Sequence record: MW384823.1
DNA length: 64,000 nt
Direction: 5' to 3' (one strand)
Below the pieces are notes generated by a model that worked only from the letters and a program-made list of their open reading frames with translations, ran no database searches and was not told the origin of the DNA. Positions 18,413-25,638 of this stretch are shown piece by piece. Position 1 is the stretch's first letter. Every line of letters begins with the position of its first letter. The position numbers were made by a program, and so were the translations under genes.

Positions 18413-18418
18413 CAGATG

Positions 18419-18450
18419 ACCACTCCTTCGGGAGTGGTTTTCTTTTTTCT
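18419..18450 (+). terminator. Intrinsic terminator
   Basis: ACCACTCC-TTCG-GGAGTGGT followed by TTTCTTTTTT. Confidence 0.9.
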
Positions 18451-18499: not shown

Positions 18500-18928
18500 A
18501 TGAATACACTGTCTTTCGAAGCGGGTAAAGGGTTAAGCGTCAACGGACATCTGGTGCCGGACACCAACAACCACCATTTTGAGAAGCTCTATCGCCGTAT
18601 CGGTGTGGGGCGTAAGGTCAACCTGAAAGTCACCAACGAGATTGCCCTCAATGGCAACGTGGCGGCTTTAGGCCCGATGTATGGCTTCCGCCCAAGTCAA
18701 GATGCCGCGGCTGCTCTGTTGCAGCACGGCGAGTTTAGCAGTGGTGTGTACGCGTTCCGTTTACTCGGTTCGCTCCGTCGTGTGTCAAACAAACACGTCG
18801 GTCAGGGCATGACACCAACCGTTTTACAATCCGGCGAAATTATCGTCCTCGTACATTCCAATCACGAACACGCTTCGGGCTTGGATTTCATGATTAGCTA
18901 TTCCGAAGTGGAGAGTGCAGATGTCTGA
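18500..18928 (+). CDS. Hypothetical protein
   Basis: TAAGGA RBS; 142 aa. Confidence 0.7.
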   Translation: MNTLSFEAGKGLSVNGHLVPDTNNHHFEKLYRRIGVGRKVNLKVTNEIALNGNVAALGPMYGFRPSQDAAAALLQHGEFSSGVYAFRLLGSLRRVSNKHVGQGMTPTVLQSGEIIVLVHSNHEHASGLDFMISYSEVESADV

Positions 18929-19805
18929 CAGAATTTACCCCGTCTTAAAGAACTTTGAACGTGTCGATACGTGGAACACCGAATCCGACATTTATCGTCA
19001 CGGTAATGTACATCAGCAGTCACTGAAAATGTACCGCCATCTCGGTGAGCTGTGTGAAGGCGTCCAGAAGATGAAGCAGCTGGAAGTGGCTTCGGCGATG
19101 GGCAAGTTTGTGGTGGCGCTGGTCGGGGTGGCTTCGTTTGCAGGAGTCGATGCACAGGAGCTGGATGAGCTTTACAGCTACGCGGGCAGAAAGGCTACGC
19201 CATGCACCCCAGCGCAAGCTGCGTGCAATCTGGTGCGTTCTACGACCTCTATGGTCAACGATATCAACCAGTGGTTGTCTCCGGCCGGGACGCAAATGGC
19301 ACGGGCCATTGCGACGTCCTCTATCTGTGAAGTTTTCTGCCTGCTCAAGCAGAACGCTTCCCTGAATGCGGTGGTGTTAGACCGCACGATTGAGAACGCC
19401 ACAAACGTACTCTGTGCGAAGAAAGGCAAGATGGATGAGTTCGGTCTGTTTCACGCGGAAGAAACTACCATTGCCACCTCCAGAACCGGTTTTGTCCATC
19501 GTGGTGTGGGCGAGTGGATTAAATTGGCTATCAACCGAGATTTGGAAGGCCGCTTCGCAGAGCTGACCTCGCAGTTGCAGTTCGAATCGAACACCGATGA
19601 AGTCAGACTGCGGGTTGAGGAGACGATGAACAGCCATCTTGAGTTTTCTTTGACCAAACACGTTCGCATGAAGCCTGCCGTTAAGCACATTCTTAATGGC
19701 CTTACCCCGGCGGTCGTAGTTTCGCAAGAAGGCAACCGTCTCGAAGTTACGTCTAACAGCGATCTGCAAACGTTGTTCACTGAATTGGAAAAGGTAACCG
19801 AATAA
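18921..19805 (+). CDS. Degenerate MazG-like (NTP pyrophosphatase fold) protein with extra C-terminal domain
   Basis: Aligns along ~165 aa to 22954..23787, but EExGE is RHLGE and DGIGD is SAMGK. Confidence 0.65.
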
Positions 19806-20872
19806 TGAAACAGTATTTAGAACTGATACACACTGTGTTGAATGATGGTCATGAAAAAGCTGACCGTACCGGCACAGGCACCATCTCTATTTTCGGTCAC
19901 CAGATGCGCTTTGACCTGCGCAAAGGTTTCCCGCTAGTCACCACCAAAAAGTTGCATCTGCGTTCTATCATTCACGAACTGCTGTGGTTCCTGAACGGCG
20001 ACACCAACATCCAGTATCTGAAAGACAATAATGTCAGTATCTGGGATGAGTGGGCGGATGAAAACGGCGACCTTGGTCCTGTTTACGGCAAGCAGTGGCG
20101 TGAATGGAACGCCGACAAAATGGTGTCCATCGACGACATGAACCTTCGTCAGCATTTGGAAGACGAAGGGTATATCGAGCGTGACATGATGTCTATCGAA
20201 GGGGAGCACTATTTCCTCTACAGTAAGACCATCGATCAGATCCAGACCATCATCGACCAGCTGCGTAACGACCCTGACAGCCGTCGCATCATCGTCAGTG
20301 CATGGAATGTGGGGGAGCTTGACCAGATGGCGTTAGCGCCGTGCCATTCCTTCTTCCAGTTCTATTCTCGTTCGATGATGGGTAAAGAATTGGATGCGTA
20401 TCTGGCTGAGTACCTTAAAACCGATACGCGGTTGGCTGAGAAATACGCCGAGCAGGTTGCCCTTTGTGAAGCAGACCCCGATGGCGATCACGTCAGCTCA
20501 CACATGTTCTGCCTGACCAACGATATACCGACCCGCGTCCTGTCCTGTCAGTTGTACCAGCGTAGTGCAGATGTATTTCTCGGTGTGCCGTTTAACATCG
20601 CGTCTTACGCGCTTCTTACCCACTTGGTCGCGCACCACGTTGGCATGGTGGCGGGTGATTTCATTTGGACAGGCGGTGATACTCATCTGTACACTAATCA
20701 CCTCGAGCAGGCCACTTTGCAGCTGACTCGCGTACCGCACCCGCTACCAAAACTGCGAATCGTTAATACAAACGGCGTACTTCCTAAAACGATCTTTAAT
20801 CACGCTTTCGAAGATTTCGTGATTGAGGACTACGAAAGCCACCCCGCAATTAAGGCACCGGTTGCCATCTAA
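19805..20872 (+). CDS. thyA: Thymidylate synthase with two insertions
   Basis: [78 protein letters not shown]. Confidence 0.98.
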
Positions 20873-20881
20873 GGAACATGT

Positions 20882-21382
20882 ATGGCCGACAACGTACTGA
20901 AGTTTCCCGGTAAACCGAACGCTCACCCGGTCGTTGTCGCGCCTCGTGAGTATCGCGCACACTTTCCTATTCAGACCCGCGATGGGAAAGTGGATTCGTT
21001 TACAGTACCGGCGGGTGATATGTATTGGTGGGCGGCGATTTACGAACAAGTTGCTGCGACCAACCCGTTTTTTGAAAACGTCTTTTACTTTTACTCCGAA
21101 CCTTACGGCTGGCAGAATCAATCCTTTGCGAAACGTAAAACATCGTGTGAATTGACGATTGACCGCCGAACCCAGATGGAAATATTGAAAGCGGTGTCTT
21201 ATACGCACGTTCTGTCTTTTGATAGCCTTCTGAACGACGACGATTACCATCTTGTCCATGATAACGCCATGATGGTGTTGACTGACGATTTGGAAATCGA
21301 TTATGCAATGGGGATATTCATGTCCCCGACAACGAACCCCGACCGGTTCATCATTAATTTCGTGGAATGCCATAATGACTGA
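20882..21382 (+). CDS. Hypothetical protein
   Basis: TAAGGA RBS; 166 aa. Confidence 0.7.
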   Translation: MADNVLKFPGKPNAHPVVVAPREYRAHFPIQTRDGKVDSFTVPAGDMYWWAAIYEQVAATNPFFENVFYFYSEPYGWQNQSFAKRKTSCELTIDRRTQMEILKAVSYTHVLSFDSLLNDDDYHLVHDNAMMVLTDDLEIDYAMGIFMSPTTNPDRFIINFVECHND

Positions 21383-22250
21383 CAAACTCAATAACCTGTA
21401 TTTCTTCTCTGACCGTTTCTACACCATGCCGGGTGACAGCTACTCCTTCGGTGTTGTTGCTGCGAAAGACACGGCCGAAGCCAAACTGATGCTGGGTACC
21501 GAACTGGTTGATGGTCTGCCACTGGGCACCACGAACGCATCCGGCCAGATTCTGTGTGCGGAAGAAATTCGCCACATCGAACCGCGTGCCGACAGCGTAG
21601 CGAAAACCGTGGTTGCTGAGCTGTGGAAACTGAACGATGGCGTGGATGTTTCCGAGCGTGTGAAGTACCTGCGCGAAACCATTTCGAAAATGCAGGGTAT
21701 TGACTGTAGCAATCTGGAAGTGGACTTCACGCGTTGCCTGCGTATTCCGGGCGGTTGTACCAGCACCGGCAGTGACCTGTGGCGCATCATGGTGAAACAC
21801 CCGGACTTCCCAAACACTGTACCGATCATGCTGTCTGCGCAGGGCGACGGTTCAATCACCGGTAACGACGATGTGAACTTCACCAAACTTGGTGAAACCG
21901 AAGAGTACACCTACCACGAAAACGTGGATCGTGTGCTGACGCCTGAGTGGCTCATGCTGGACTTGTTGGAACAACACGGCCTGACCCCAGAAGACTGGTA
22001 CGTTATCGCCGGTACGGCGCGTGCAGCAGCCTATAGCGCTGCTCCGGTGGACGGCTGGGAAGAGGTGGCTGAGGTATACGGCCAGAATGAAAGCGCGCAC
22101 GTTATCCGCTTCTGGCTGAACCCAGACTGGCAGAATCTGATTGTGGCGGCTGTGGCGAAAGTGGTTGAGTCCATGCCAAAAGAGCCGTTGCCAGAAAACC
22201 TCGCCGACGAGCTGGCGGGTTCCGAATCTGCGGACGAAACCGCAGAGTAA
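21375..22250 (+). CDS. Hypothetical protein
   Basis: ATG 21375 overlaps the end of the previous gene; strong high-expression codon bias (CTG, GAA, ACC, AAC). Confidence 0.75.
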   Translation: MTDKLNNLYFFSDRFYTMPGDSYSFGVVAAKDTAEAKLMLGTELVDGLPLGTTNASGQILCAEEIRHIEPRADSVAKTVVAELWKLNDGVDVSERVKYLRETISKMQGIDCSNLEVDFTRCLRIPGGCTSTGSDLWRIMVKHPDFPNTVPIMLSAQGDGSITGNDDVNFTKLGETEEYTYHENVDRVLTPEWLMLDLLEQHGLTPEDWYVIAGTARAAAYSAAPVDGWEEVAEVYGQNESAHVIRFWLNPDWQNLIVAAVAKVVESMPKEPLPENLADELAGSESADETAE

Positions 22251-22272
22251 CTTAACTGAAAAGGTGAATAAA

Positions 22273-22725
22273 GTGTCTAAGACTCTAATCAATTACGATT
22301 TAGTAGTGCAAGAACTTTCCAAAGGCTTGATTGCTCTCGACAGTGAAACGGCGTTGCGTTGCAATATGCTTCCCCATATCGCGCTAAGTGAGTTCCGCAC
22401 GATTCGTTATGGTGCCGGTCGCCAAAAAGGCGTCACCGAATACATTTCGAAGTTAGCCGCGGGGCACAATGGACCGGTATTGGTTCTGACGCATGCCGTG
22501 GCGCTACGGGACGAATTCATGTTCCGTGTCGAAGGTAACTTTCCGGGTAAAGACAACATCACATCGTTATGTGGCTACTTCCCCGACAATTGGCGAGTTG
22601 AAAAGTTCAGCCTCGTTATTGTTGATGAAGCCGGTTTCTTCTTTAAGAAGTTTGGCTACGATAAAATCTATCGCAGTCTGGCAACACAAACGACTGATGA
22701 TGTAGTGATTCACCTGATTAACTGA
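22273..22725 (+). CDS. Small stand-alone P-loop/ASCE-like protein (terminase/SF2 ATPase-like, degenerate Walker A)
   Basis: IRYGAGRQKGVT (cf. GRQxGKT), VLVLTH strand and Walker B LVIVDEA. Start is GTG 22273 or 22264. Confidence 0.55.
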   Translation: MSKTLINYDLVVQELSKGLIALDSETALRCNMLPHIALSEFRTIRYGAGRQKGVTEYISKLAAGHNGPVLVLTHAVALRDEFMFRVEGNFPGKDNITSLCGYFPDNWRVEKFSLVIVDEAGFFFKKFGYDKIYRSLATQTTDDVVIHLIN

Positions 22726-22733
22726 GGTTTGTA

Positions 22734-22898
22734 ATGTCCCAAGTAGAGAAAGAAGTCATCGCACAAGCAGATAACGCTTCACTGGACGATTTGTTCGGTG
22801 GTGATATTCCGGGTGTGGACGAGAACGCAGTGGTTGAAGGCGGTGTTGATGCTGGCGCTGAAGACGACAACTGCGCAGGCGGTGCCTGCAAAATTTAA
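22734..22898 (+). CDS. 54-aa acidic peptide ending in an NrdA-like CxxxxC tail
   Basis: Missing from the ORF track. GAGGT RBS, ATG 22734, TAA 22898. Translation MSQVEKEVIAQADNASLDDLFGGDIPGVDENAVVEGGVDAGAEDDNCAGGACKI. Followed by a hairpin. Confidence 0.8.
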   Translation: MSQVEKEVIAQADNASLDDLFGGDIPGVDENAVVEGGVDAGAEDDNCAGGACKI

Positions 22899-22905
22899 CA
22901 AGAGC

Positions 22906-22925
22906 GGGTGTCCTTATGGACACCC
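22906..22925 (+). terminator. Hairpin / weak intrinsic terminator
   Basis: GGGTGTCC-TTAT-GGACACCC followed by CTATTTCATTTTTT. Confidence 0.65.
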
Positions 22926-22953
22926 CTATTTCATTTTTTAAGGACTATCAGAA

Positions 22954-23787
22954 ATGCAACAGACTTTTGAGTTACCGATTGAACACAAAGCCGTCATCCT
23001 GAACAGTGCCATCTTAGATTTCGTCATGCCTCAGTTGGCGGCGGCCGGTAAACGGATGTCTCGCATTACGCGTCTGGCAATCAGTAGTGAAGGCCCACAG
23101 ACGCTGGTTAACGGTTTTACCTTCGAAGGTGAACCGGCAGAATTCCACGCAATGCTGCGCTATCACACCGGTCTCGAGTTCCACAAAGAGCCGGTCTACC
23201 ATAACCGCATCGTCCCGCTGTACCGTGTGTCGCAGTGTGTGGCTAAAGTCATCGGCTGGTCAACTGACCGCGGTATTCTGGAAAACGGCCGTTGGGACTC
23301 ACAGGGTACCAAGCTGTATGAAGAAGACGGCGAAGCAGCAACCGGCGTGGGTAAAAACAAAAAGCGTCTGATCATCGACGGCATCGGTGATGCACTGGTT
23401 GTACTGGTCAACGTACTGGAACTGACCAGCATCGATGCGGCAGAAATTGCCCACATTTATCAGTTGGTGCGTGACACCAGAACTGTGGTGGACAACCCGC
23501 ACTACCATTTCCACAAAATGCGCAAGAACCTGACCGAAGTGGTCGATGTGGTTTACGAATGTGAAGCCATTGACTCACCGAAGAAAGTGGAAATCGGCCG
23601 CTTAACGCACGACGAACGTCAGCAGATGCTGGGTCATGCACAACAGGCTATCCATCACGCTAACCAGTTGGCGCGCCACTACGACTACTCGCTGGACGAG
23701 TGCTTCTCTCTGGCGTGGGATGAAATCAAAGACCGTAAAGGTTTCCTGAGCGCTGACGGCGTGTTCATCAAAGAAGCCGACGCTTAA
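22954..23787 (+). CDS. MazG-like nucleotide pyrophosphohydrolase
   Basis: W..DRGI...Q..KLYEEDGE...IIDGIGDALVVL...DECF..AWDEIKDRKG..DGVFIKE, the phage MazG-like signature with acidic ligands intact. Confidence 0.85.
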   Translation: MQQTFELPIEHKAVILNSAILDFVMPQLAAAGKRMSRITRLAISSEGPQTLVNGFTFEGEPAEFHAMLRYHTGLEFHKEPVYHNRIVPLYRVSQCVAKVIGWSTDRGILENGRWDSQGTKLYEEDGEAATGVGKNKKRLIIDGIGDALVVLVNVLELTSIDAAEIAHIYQLVRDTRTVVDNPHYHFHKMRKNLTEVVDVVYECEAIDSPKKVEIGRLTHDERQQMLGHAQQAIHHANQLARHYDYSLDECFSLAWDEIKDRKGFLSADGVFIKEADA

Positions 23788-23819
23788 TTCACGTCCACTA
23801 ACAATGCAGGAGTAGGACA

Positions 23820-24674
23820 ATGGAATACCAATTATTTCTCATCACGAACGACTTTACCAAATCCCATGTGGATGAGTCGTTTCATGCCACGGTAGTCGCA
23901 CCGACAGAAGCGGCTGCTCGTTGGATTGTTGCCCAGCAATGCACAAACCTCGCCATGCGCGAAGTGCAGGCTGCGGTAGCTTTTGCAGTGGGTAAGATTG
24001 ACGCCCCTGCTGAGGGAATAATTTCGTTCGAGTATGGACGGCGTAATCGCTTCCCGGTACTCAGCCTCGATGAGTATAAGCTCCAAGATGTGTTTATTGA
24101 GGTTGAGCTGCACGGTGGTATTCAGCCGACGCACAGTATCCACCCGCCGGTGCCGGGTGCTGTTGTCAGATGCTTCGCCAGCAAAGAACACCCACGCATC
24201 GTACTGATTCGCAGCACGCTCAAGACCACCGTTCCAACGGTCGTTGAGGAAGTGGGTGTAACTAACGAAGCGACGTCGATTCAACTCTACACCGTTCACT
24301 CACCGTCGGCTTACACCGAAGTTCCGAAAGGTGAAGTCTTCACCACCGAATACATTAACCTGTTTGGGCGTGAAGATGTGTTGTTGTTCCGTTCGCTGAT
24401 TATCCGTAATACGGAATTGGCCTACCAGAACAAGCGCACGGAAGAACTGCTGCATGAGCTGCAATCTTTCTTCGCCGAAGGTGGTGACCGCAACAGCATG
24501 GACGCGGGTATCAGTTACTATCCGGGTCAAAAGCTGACCATTGCCGATCCCAGCAAGTTGGTGCTGTGGGTGATGTCGTTGCCGCAGGTTATTACGCTTG
24601 ACCGTATCATTACGGAAGAAAGCCTCAAGCCGATTGCAGGCACTAACTGCCAGACCCTGAATACGGGAGAGTAG
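23820..24674 (+). CDS. Hypothetical protein
   Basis: AGGAG RBS; 284 aa. Confidence 0.7.
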   Translation: MEYQLFLITNDFTKSHVDESFHATVVAPTEAAARWIVAQQCTNLAMREVQAAVAFAVGKIDAPAEGIISFEYGRRNRFPVLSLDEYKLQDVFIEVELHGGIQPTHSIHPPVPGAVVRCFASKEHPRIVLIRSTLKTTVPTVVEEVGVTNEATSIQLYTVHSPSAYTEVPKGEVFTTEYINLFGREDVLLFRSLIIRNTELAYQNKRTEELLHELQSFFAEGGDRNSMDAGISYYPGQKLTIADPSKLVLWVMSLPQVITLDRIITEESLKPIAGTNCQTLNTGE

Positions 24675-24675
24675 C

Positions 24676-25182
24676 ATGTTTGATGTGAACGTCGTCCCCC
24701 GGTTGGACGAGTTCGTCGTGCAGATAAACAACGAAGTTATCTGTGTCTGCGACGAACAACGGGCCAACTTCTGGCGCTGTTGTATGGGTGCGGATAAGGT
24801 CTTCGTCAGTTGTGATGTCGGTGTGTCGTTTGGTGAAGAACCGCTGCGCCTCTGCAAGTTCCGTATCAGTGAAGCGGAGATGCGCACGTTACTCAGTCAG
24901 GTGGTGTATACCTTCGACCACCTTGATAATGAAAACCGCGTGGGTTGGGCAGAGATTGACCCGTCGATTACACGGATGCTGCGTCAAGGGGCTGAGGAGA
25001 TTGTTGAGTCACAAAGCATGTGGCTTGATGAAGATGATGTGTACCCGAAAGGTGTACCGTTTATCCTTATCCATCCTGACCGCAATACCCGCACGGGTGA
25101 AGCCTTCATCGAACTGATGTTCATCGAAATGCCGGAGAACCATGATGTCGAAGAAAAAGAATCAGCTGACCTTCAATGCTGA
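24676..25182 (+). CDS. Hypothetical protein
   Basis: GGGAG RBS; 168 aa. Confidence 0.65.
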   Translation: MFDVNVVPRLDEFVVQINNEVICVCDEQRANFWRCCMGADKVFVSCDVGVSFGEEPLRLCKFRISEAEMRTLLSQVVYTFDHLDNENRVGWAEIDPSITRMLRQGAEEIVESQSMWLDEDDVYPKGVPFILIHPDRNTRTGEAFIELMFIEMPENHDVEEKESADLQC

Positions 25183-25588: not shown

Positions 25589-25638
25589 ATAAAAAAGACT
25601 ACCTACTCCCGAAGGAGTAGGTAGCTTTATTTTTTTTG
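25589..25638. terminator. Bidirectional intrinsic terminator (repeat family)
   Basis: CTACCTACTCC-CGAA-GGAGTAGGTAG at 25599-25624, identical to 9104-9129, with A- and T-tracts. Confidence 0.9.

Follow-up and report, generated by a model that had tools for sequence, protein, structure and literature searches.

A phage enzyme of nucleotide metabolism very likely has a dead sister that has been kept under selection next to the thymidylate synthase gene thyA. The two genes, here called A and B, were studied in a window of 64,000 nucleotides (nt) from sequence record MW384823.1, the window being the whole stretch of DNA that was analysed (coordinates in Table 1). Its part from 18500 to 24700 (6.2 kilobases, kb), in which A, thyA and B lie, is 100% identical to the Erwinia phages pEa_SNUABM_43 and pEa_SNUABM_42, which are jumbo phages of 241.9 kb that belong to the genus Machinavirus and have Erwinia amylovora as host. 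The reading favoured here is that A is a selected, non-catalytic paralog of B, that it binds nucleotides and acts with the thymidylate synthase ThyA, and that it is not an obligate subunit of B, and the probability of this statement as a whole is put at roughly 0.5. Its parts differ in strength, as it is very likely that A is an inactivated and selected paralog of B, and the binding role linked to ThyA is a tentative, rather doubtful suggestion.

The homology of A and B, which had been seen in a preliminary description made from the sequence alone, is confirmed and far beyond chance, and both open reading frames are present as given there. In BLASTP, residues 5-85 of A align to residues 89-169 of B, which makes 81 residues with 31% identity (E-value 9e-7) and, as had been described, no gap. 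The two family profiles draw on nine sequences of A and eight of B from four genera, and hhalign aligns them over 184 columns, from 4 to 188 in A and from 88 to 277 in B, with a probability of 97.5% and an E-value of 5.9e-12. The C-terminal signature K-G...G-x-F, for which an agreement of both copies had also been claimed, indeed lies inside this longer alignment. Among the PHROG families, A matches phrog_10269 (E-value 1e-129), phrog_7855 (mazG, 6.7e-13) and phrog_715 (3.4e-8), and B matches the same three in another order, with phrog_7855 at 2.4e-119, phrog_715 at 5.5e-24 and phrog_10269 at 1.4e-11, and by these profile matches both proteins belong to the MazG/HisE/dimeric dUTPase superfamily. 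B reaches 15.5 bits with the MazG model of Pfam, which is below the cut-off of 22, and A has no Pfam or NCBIfam match. The dUTPase_2 family (PF08761) gave no Pfam match for A or B at E-values up to 1, nor in the whole phage record, and therefore A and B are not filed as dimeric dUTPases, their resemblance to these enzymes being structural. In the PDB, the B profile finds a weak match to the MazG structure 1vmg (E-value 0.011), the A profile finds nothing credible, and single-sequence phmmer searches with A and B gave no match.

Both proteins are predicted to adopt the all-alpha nucleoside triphosphate (NTP) pyrophosphohydrolase fold in its long, dimeric-dUTPase-like type, which consists of a MazG core plus three helices. 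AlphaFold2 models computed from alignments have a predicted local distance difference test score (pLDDT) of 83 for A and 94 for B, and the order of the predicted secondary-structure elements is identical in the two helical domains: in A, the helices 8-21, 24-27, 30-49, 53-73, 78-87, 97-118, 125-148 and 153-166 are followed by a hairpin at 169-179, and in B, the helices 92-105, 108-111, 114-134, 137-157, 164-172, 182-201, 219-242 and 247-258 are followed by a hairpin at 263-273. The four-helix "basic module" of the superfamily is found in both models. In an exhaustive VIA-align search, the dimeric dUTPases 1w2y, 5myd and 2yay are the top three matches of the A model (Z 10.2, 10.1 and 9.2) and likewise of the B model (Z 8.2, 9.0 and 7.7), with 138-152 residues aligned, and next comes MazG 1vmg (Z 6.8-7.0, first 83 residues), followed by HisE and other MazG chains; the MazG and HisE structures 1vmg, 2yxh, 1yvw, 3c90 and 7yh5 range from Z 5.4 to 7.0. 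These values agree between the two models and exceed those of unrelated entries. With the A model, BFVD returns its orthologs, then B (E-value 4e-8, root-mean-square deviation 3.1 Å, 186 columns), and then many models of phage NTP pyrophosphohydrolases and dUTPases. A Foldseek search of the PDB alone returned nothing at E ≤ 0.001 for either model, and the fold assignment therefore is based on VIA-align, BFVD and the sequence profiles together. The preliminary description had named a failure of A to model as a MazG fold as a refutation; the A model matches dimeric dUTPases and then MazG.

It is the metal site in which the two proteins differ. In B, E123, E124, E127, D142 and D146 are invariant in eight phages and nearly invariant in 33 sequences, and its profile lines up EE..E and D...D with the acidic motifs of the MazG structures 1vmg, 2gta and 5ie9. 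The acidic pattern of the superfamily, EExx(E/D) on helix 2 and (E/D)xx(x)D on helix 3, is present in B and absent from A. In MazG of Mycobacterium tuberculosis, the corresponding residues Glu119, Glu122, Glu138 and Asp141 bind magnesium, and Mg2+ has been called indispensable after mutational analysis, and the dUTPase of Campylobacter jejuni uses Glu46, Glu49, Glu74 and Asp77 (PMC10014863). The replacements that had been noticed before, EE to RH and D..GD to S..GK, can be placed exactly: R39-H40 of A stands where B has E123-E124, and S58..G61-K62 where B has D142..G145-D146; E127 of B aligns with E43 of A. In the alignment, the metal-binding acids are missing from A in nine phages of four genera.

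This extends to the whole A family, as is seen from a profile search among 1.84 billion representative proteins. The family comprises 17 clusters at 50% identity, 16 of them below an E-value of 1e-30 and the last one at 7.3e-30, which are separated by a sharp gap from ordinary MazG-like proteins at 2e-10; a word-index search with A returned six close relatives. None of the 17 clusters has retained the EE pair or the first of the two Asp residues of D...D, which is why their loss dates to the origin of the family. The position of the first Glu is occupied by Arg (R39) in 15 of the 17, and the two Asp positions carry S/A/G/K and K/R/N/Q/G, the last Asp being replaced by K, R, N or Q in 14 clusters and by Glu in two. 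As the acids of both helices are gone, A is probably unable to carry out the two-metal NTP hydrolysis, and it would count as a structural member of the superfamily and not as a canonical enzyme. A is thus a new, probably inactive branch of the superfamily, and B is an ordinary though divergent phage MazG-like enzyme.

A has a conserved set of residues of its own, which comprises W18, Y25, G28, Q32, Q33, K36, Y38, R39, G42, E46-G-V-Q-K50, G61, R155, N159, G169, G175 and F177 among about 24 residues that are invariant across the four genera, and E-G-V-Q-K is the most invariant motif of the family. Common to A and B are the W, the Q, K36/K120, the Y, glycines, K50/K134 and the hairpin, and in B the counterpart of E-G-V-Q-K is a conserved G-V/I-x-K. 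The last helix and hairpin of A (149-180) also resemble seven stretches of P0089, a protein of 1087 amino acids (aa) from the representative library, in which they form a repeat.

How A originated can be told from a maximum-likelihood tree of the helical domains, which contains 10 A sequences, 11 B sequences, five distant two-domain relatives and six short MazG-like proteins as outgroup (the fragment P0060 was left out). The A sequences form one clade with 100/100 support, whose stem is 3.46 substitutions per site long and which is nested inside the two-domain B-like clade with 99/98 support. Long-branch attraction would draw A to the outgroup and not to this place. The three-helix insertion is common to A and B and absent from the short MazG-like proteins, and the nested clade together with this shared insertion indicates that A is a duplicate of a B-like gene that has passed through a burst of change.

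The duplicate has not been left to decay. For residues 1-185 of A, the ratio of non-synonymous to synonymous substitution rates (dN/dS) is 0.036 against phage Machina and 0.13 against phage Huxley; the helical domain of B has values of 0.011-0.018 and thyA of 0.07-0.11. Even the degenerate allele of the SPN3US/SPFM phages has a dN/dS of 0.11, with 14 non-synonymous and 32 synonymous differences. Since purifying selection thus includes the degenerate allele, A is a functional gene and not a wreck. Two marks of a pseudoenzyme are found in it, namely that this homolog of an active enzyme lacks the catalytic residues in every ortholog and that it is under purifying selection, the latter in three close pairs. 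The earlier proposal of a dead paralog that is retained as a pseudo-enzyme is well supported by acids lost family-wide, a dN/dS of 0.04-0.13 and a shared predicted fold.

A and B occur together in a block that is kept in the genera Machinavirus, Seoulvirus, Erskinevirus and Wellingtonvirus and has the order 142-aa gene, A, thyA, three to five small genes, B. The co-occurrence across jumbo phages, which the preliminary description had suggested to check, is therefore found in four genera, but it does not hold in Derbicusvirus (CR5, Phobos), where thyA and a well-conserved B are present and A is missing. That the two copies flank thyA, as had been said, applies in the strict sense to A, which abuts thyA; B is placed 2.1 kb further downstream, beyond four genes and a stem-loop. 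A lies directly 5' of thyA in all contexts examined, which include three metagenomic contigs, and the adjacency is found in the window and in the phages Machina, Huxley, ChrisDB, Caitlin, SPAsTU, EC001, SPN3US, SPFM17, Asesino, phiEaH2 and Kwan. The ATG start of A at 18921 agrees with the GenBank start and has a GGAGAG ribosome-binding site 7 nt upstream, the 3' end of the 142-aa gene and the start of A have 8 nt in common, and the stop codon of A shares one base with the start codon of thyA; the same or a similar overlap of A and thyA exists also in other genera and is the usual arrangement. In the whole phage record, A and B are the only MazG-like genes, of which B alone is intact, and a trimeric dUTPase, dUTPase_2, dCMP deaminase or large subunit of ribonucleotide reductase (RNR) was not found there, wherefore B is probably the only phage candidate for converting dUTP or dCTP into the precursor of ThyA.

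A is the most exchangeable gene of the block. Between genera, identities are 23-40% for A, 41-53% for B and 53-68% for thyA, and EC001 and SPN3US, which belong to one species, are 98.6% identical in the upstream gene, 98.4% in B, 85.7% in thyA and 38.8% in A. The reverse is seen with Asesino and phiEaH2, which have a distance of 0.15 in A and of 0.46 in B, and the alleles of A and B thus assort independently. The trees of A and B are incongruent. In the C-terminal domain of A, the window and Huxley have 42% identity at a saturated synonymous divergence (dS), which indicates a replacement of alleles rather than fast point change. The dS amounts to 2.8 for A 186-294 against Huxley and to 1.3 for thyA against Machina, with flanking genes at 0.2-0.4, and the C-terminal domain of A together with thyA (window 19476-20872) is, on these comparisons, a recombination hot spot. 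On one metagenomic contig (L025:4141-6379), an EC001-type A is followed by a stand-alone C-terminal domain of 112 aa of the SPN3US type and then by thyA, and this extra copy looks like a scar of an allele exchange.

The preliminary description had also assigned a separate extra domain to each copy, and this agrees with the models, in which residues 1-88 of B are beta-rich and residues 196-290 of A form an alpha/beta domain. Searches of the ESM Atlas with these two domains gave no usable match. Weak tail-sheath-like matches of A 194-291 in VIA-align (Z 5.6-6.1) are within noise. Five clusters of the A family lack the C-terminal domain, and the domain is found elsewhere as a stand-alone open reading frame. 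In Wellingtonvirus, the A ortholog is a bare domain of 191 aa, and B has 460-467 aa with a C-terminal extension of about 150 residues that is absent elsewhere (Erwinia phage Kwan, L008:8437-9819; L014, L016).

For the function of A, the following can be proposed. A would derive by duplication from the phage's own all-alpha NTP pyrophosphohydrolase and would then have lost the metal-binding acids. It would have kept positions that, judging from relatives, contact phosphate or sugar, namely K36, the loop lysine K50 and R155-x3-N159, and basic residues at the old metal site together with these retained contact positions suggest a metal-free binding of a phosphorylated ligand. A would act as a nucleotide-binding, non-hydrolysing sensor or adaptor that is produced in a fixed ratio with ThyA by coupled translation, and it would serve the thymidylate supply of the phage, for which B would provide the deoxynucleoside monophosphate (dNMP). 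It would not be an obligate subunit of B, and its variable C-terminal domain would be a separate module. A more specific idea is that A is a metal-free receptor, which either reads a deoxyuridine or thymidine nucleotide or sequesters an alarm or immune nucleotide of the host, and which signals via the exchangeable C-terminal domain, the recipient being either ThyA or a target in the host, and this is considered improbable.

Several points weigh against the favoured reading. In densely packed phage genomes, adjoining genes with overlapping stop and start codons are frequent, and the position of A next to thyA is no proof of a functional link. In mirror-tree distances, the correlation of A with its 5' neighbour (r 0.80) is higher than that with thyA (0.66), and the method does not meaningfully separate a co-evolution of A and thyA from one of A and B. 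Z values of 8-10 can be reached by chance among helical bundles, and the fold assignment leans on the added sequence evidence. E43 is acidic in 9 of the 17 clusters and E46 has been gained, being invariant in the alignments of nine phages and of 12 sequences and kept in 16 of the 17 clusters, and a reduced or altered metal site is thus possible. In the SPN3US/SPFM allele, R39, the E-G-V-Q-K motif with E46, and the hairpin motif are gone, and as this allele is nevertheless under selection, the function in that lineage must be independent of these. The assignment of ligand contacts is by analogy to phage phiDI Dut, in which the alpha2-alpha3 "latch" loop takes catalytic residues into the active site of the neighbouring protomer and helix 8 bears K154, R161 and N158, the last of which holds the deoxyribose (PMC5608427); E-G-V-Q-K of A would correspond to the latch position and R155-x3-N159 to the K-x3-N position of motif V.

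Of the alternatives, two had been put forward in the preliminary description. A might form hetero-oligomers with B and tune its activity, and in such an A:B dimer the invariant loop lysine of A could complete or block the site of B. It speaks for this idea that A and B are paralogs of the same predicted fold in one block that is conserved in four genera, and that the stretch equivalent to the phiDI Dut latch, which enters the neighbouring protomer (PMC5608427), is the most conserved part of A and conserved also in B. An obligate partner would hardly be expected to have the independent alleles seen in the EC001/SPN3US and Asesino/phiEaH2 pairs or an incongruent tree, Derbicusvirus possesses B and thyA without A, and a stem-loop and four genes lie between A and B, whereas A is coupled to thyA; this makes the hetero-oligomer unlikely. 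Of similarly low probability is a counter-defence sponge that binds (p)ppGpp, cyclic oligonucleotides or a signal derived from adenosine diphosphate ribose or related to deoxynucleoside triphosphates (dNTPs) without cleaving it. The fold has been kept while basic residues replaced the acidic metal site, the turnover of A alleles is very fast and mosaic in comparison with neighbouring genes, A is accessory in its distribution and variable in its C-terminal module, and there is a precedent in Atd1, an active phage MazG-like enzyme that removes (p)ppGpp and protects against TIR effectors (bioRxiv 10.1101/2022.06.09.495361). However, the fold is not that of any known sponge, Tad1-, Tad2- or Acb2-like proteins were found neither among the PDB and BFVD fold matches of A nor in the PHROG, Pfam and NCBIfam scans, the invariable place before thyA points to nucleotide metabolism and not to an anti-defence island, and the high dS of the divergent parts reflects recombination between old alleles and not positive selection.

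It is quite unlikely that A is still an enzyme, either a one-metal hydrolase using E43 and E46 or, without need of a metal, a phosphohydrolase or transferase with another nucleotide as substrate. The nearly universal E46 and an E43 position that is acidic in about half of the clusters would give an E-x-x-E spacing on helix 2, and strong purifying selection acts on the polar set Q32, Q33, K36, R39, E46, Q49, K50, R155 and N159, but the metal ligands of the superfamily come from two helices, of which the second has lost both acids in nearly all members, Mg2+ has been called indispensable for M. tuberculosis MazG (PMC10014863), and the SPN3US allele does without E46 and R39. Least likely is that A has no function of its own and is a decaying duplicate whose reading frame is kept for the translation of thyA. 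A does evolve far faster between genera than B or thyA, its motifs have decayed in the SPN3US/SPFM lineage, and it is absent from Derbicusvirus, but the low dN/dS was obtained in three independent close comparisons, one of them with the degenerate allele, the invariant residues persist in intact frames over four genera, and full-length open frames exist in 17 of 17 clusters. A selected, non-catalytic paralog that works in the neighbourhood of ThyA is thus preferred over all of these.

Table 1. Positions of genes, protein regions and sequence signals in the window
Feature	Position	Strand	Remarks
Gene A	18921..19805	+	pEaSNUABM43_00243, 294 aa, phrog_10269; GenBank label "hypothetical protein"
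A residues 1-185, helical MazG-like/dimeric-dUTPase-like domain	18921..19475	+	predicted model, fold searches
A residues 39-50, R39-H40 in place of EE of B	19035..19070	+	E-G-V-Q-K lies where helix 2 ends and in the loop after it
A residues 58-62, S-A-M-G-K in place of D-G-I-G-D of B	19092..19106	+	
A residues 155-177, invariant R155 and N159, then hairpin G169...G175-x-F177	19383..19451	+	hairpin shared with B
A residues 196-290, variable alpha/beta C-terminal domain	19506..19790	+	AlphaFold2 model, family clusters
TAATG, stop of A and start of thyA overlapping by one base	19803..19807	+	probable translational coupling
thyA, thymidylate synthase, 355 aa	19805..20872	+	
Gene B	22954..23787	+	pEaSNUABM43_00249, 277 aa, phrog_7855; GenBank label "putative nucleotide pyrophosphohydrolase"
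B residues 1-88, beta-rich N-terminal extra domain	22954..23217	+	AlphaFold2 model
B residues 123-146, E-E-D-G-E ... D-G-I-G-D, metal-binding acids	23320..23391	+	alignment of eight phages
B residues 255-271, W-D-E-I-K-D-R-K-G-F-L-x-A-D-G-x-F, last helix and hairpin	23716..23766	+	nearly invariant
142-aa gene, phrog_9744 (unknown function)	18500..18928	+	conserved 5' partner of A
Four conserved genes between thyA and B (phrog_9376, phrog_10453, phrog_2586, 54-aa peptide gene)	20882..22898	+	
Terminator-like stem-loop followed by T-run	18418..18439	+	likely 5' boundary of a transcription unit g242-A-thyA; consensus scan
Perfect 8-bp GC-rich stem-loop between thyA block and B	22906..22925	+	possible terminator or processing site; consensus scan

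The two stem-loops in Table 1 enclose a block that begins with the 142-aa gene and ends with the 54-aa peptide gene, and they set B apart; they come from a consensus pattern scan, in which the number of such sites was not above the expectation from shuffled sequence. Further downstream, a perfect stem-loop of 11-12 base pairs at 25599-25624, with T-runs on either side on both strands, lies between convergent gene blocks and is likely a bidirectional terminator. Just 5' of B, at 22734-22898 (+ strand), a gene encodes an acidic peptide of 54 aa with the C-terminus C-A-G-G-A-C-K-I, and its position is kept in all related phages. This end resembles the C-terminal tail of class Ia NrdA, which is redox-active, and the peptide may be a tail mimic that is aimed at RNR, thioredoxin or glutaredoxin of the host. 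In the 150-aa protein of phrog_2586 (22273-22725, + strand), the residues V-I-V-D-E-A-G-F-F are reminiscent of Walker B in thymidine kinases; the idea that this product is a P-loop protein of a degenerate thymidine-kinase type was not supported by PDB sequence search and NCBIfam.

ThyA itself keeps the catalytic Cys, the Asn that specifies dUMP and the C-terminal APVAI, and a role as hydroxymethylase for a modified base was considered and rejected on account of this Asn and the thymidylate synthase C-terminus. With its 355 aa, the protein extends about 90 residues beyond the span of the Pfam model. Insertions are found at two fixed sites, after W101 (about 102-140) and after F-Q-F-Y187 (about 188-243), and their sequence and length vary by genus; in ChrisDB ThyA, the first insertion is longer and placed at another site, and the catalytic core is invariant.

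With these results, PHROG 10269, a family of "unknown function" from four genera of SPN3US-like jumbo phages, gains an identity as a probably dead branch of the MazG/dimeric-dUTPase superfamily that has an invariant motif of its own. No published description of gene A was found, nor anything relevant on gp228, gp229 or gp235 of SPN3US, and no comparable redeployed inactive paralog of the all-alpha fold was found described for phages in the literature. The strict coupling to thyA suggests a nucleotide protein that only binds and that takes part in thymidylate supply, in a genome without RNR large subunit, dCMP deaminase and classical dUTPase. If A were indeed the metal-free receptor considered above, its fast-exchanging alleles would constitute an arms-race module that SPN3US-like jumbo phages carry inside their thymidylate operon. 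Inactive enzyme paralogs are common and the significance is modest in this respect; SPN3US has amber-mutant genetics, which makes the hypothesis on A tractable in that phage.

Compared with known systems, A and B share the four-helix core of MazG-type enzymes such as those of Saccharolobus solfataricus (S. solfataricus, 1vmg) and M. tuberculosis (7yh5) and of PHROG 7855, 715 and 1992, and B resembles M. tuberculosis MazG also in bearing an N-terminal extra domain (PMC10014863). Unlike these enzymes, A and B have three additional helices, which follow helix 3 and precede the last one, as well as a C-terminal hairpin, and A lacks the metal-binding acids. Atd1, a MazG-like phage pyrophosphatase acting on (p)ppGpp, weakens TIR-based defence and is a precedent for the alarmone idea, but its catalysis depends on the twin acidic motifs that A does not have (bioRxiv 10.1101/2022.06.09.495361). 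The best structural matches of both helical domains are the dimeric dUTPases of C. jejuni (1w2y), Leishmania major (2yay) and the Staphylococcus aureus phage phiDI (5myd), although the Pfam family dUTPase_2 has no sequence match in A, B or the rest of the genome, and the invariant R155-x3-N159 of A resembles motif V, K154-x3-N158, of phiDI Dut. Dimeric Duts of staphylococcal phages have a second role as derepressors of Staphylococcus aureus pathogenicity islands (SaPIs), and the fold can thus be a protein-binding signalling module, with binding dependent on the nucleotide state (PMC5608427). The staphylococcal proteins are still active enzymes; A, by contrast, no longer has the metal site. 

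In herpesviruses, inactive dUTPase paralogs have been redeployed for other tasks, and like in the case of A, a nucleotide-sanitising enzyme has been duplicated and one copy without catalysis has been kept for another function. The herpesvirus proteins have the beta-rich trimeric fold and belong to animal viruses, whereas A has the all-alpha fold and is tied to thyA in a jumbo phage. In phage T4, gp56, an active dCTPase/dUTPase of the all-alpha NTP pyrophosphohydrolase type, works together with the ThyA-family enzymes gp42 and Td in a complex that synthesises dNTPs, being tied to them physically as well as in function. The ThyA of the window has true thymidylate synthase residues and not those of a hydroxymethylase. 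The gp56 complex can serve as a model for how B, as the supplier of dNMP, and perhaps A, as an adaptor, may be placed relative to ThyA.

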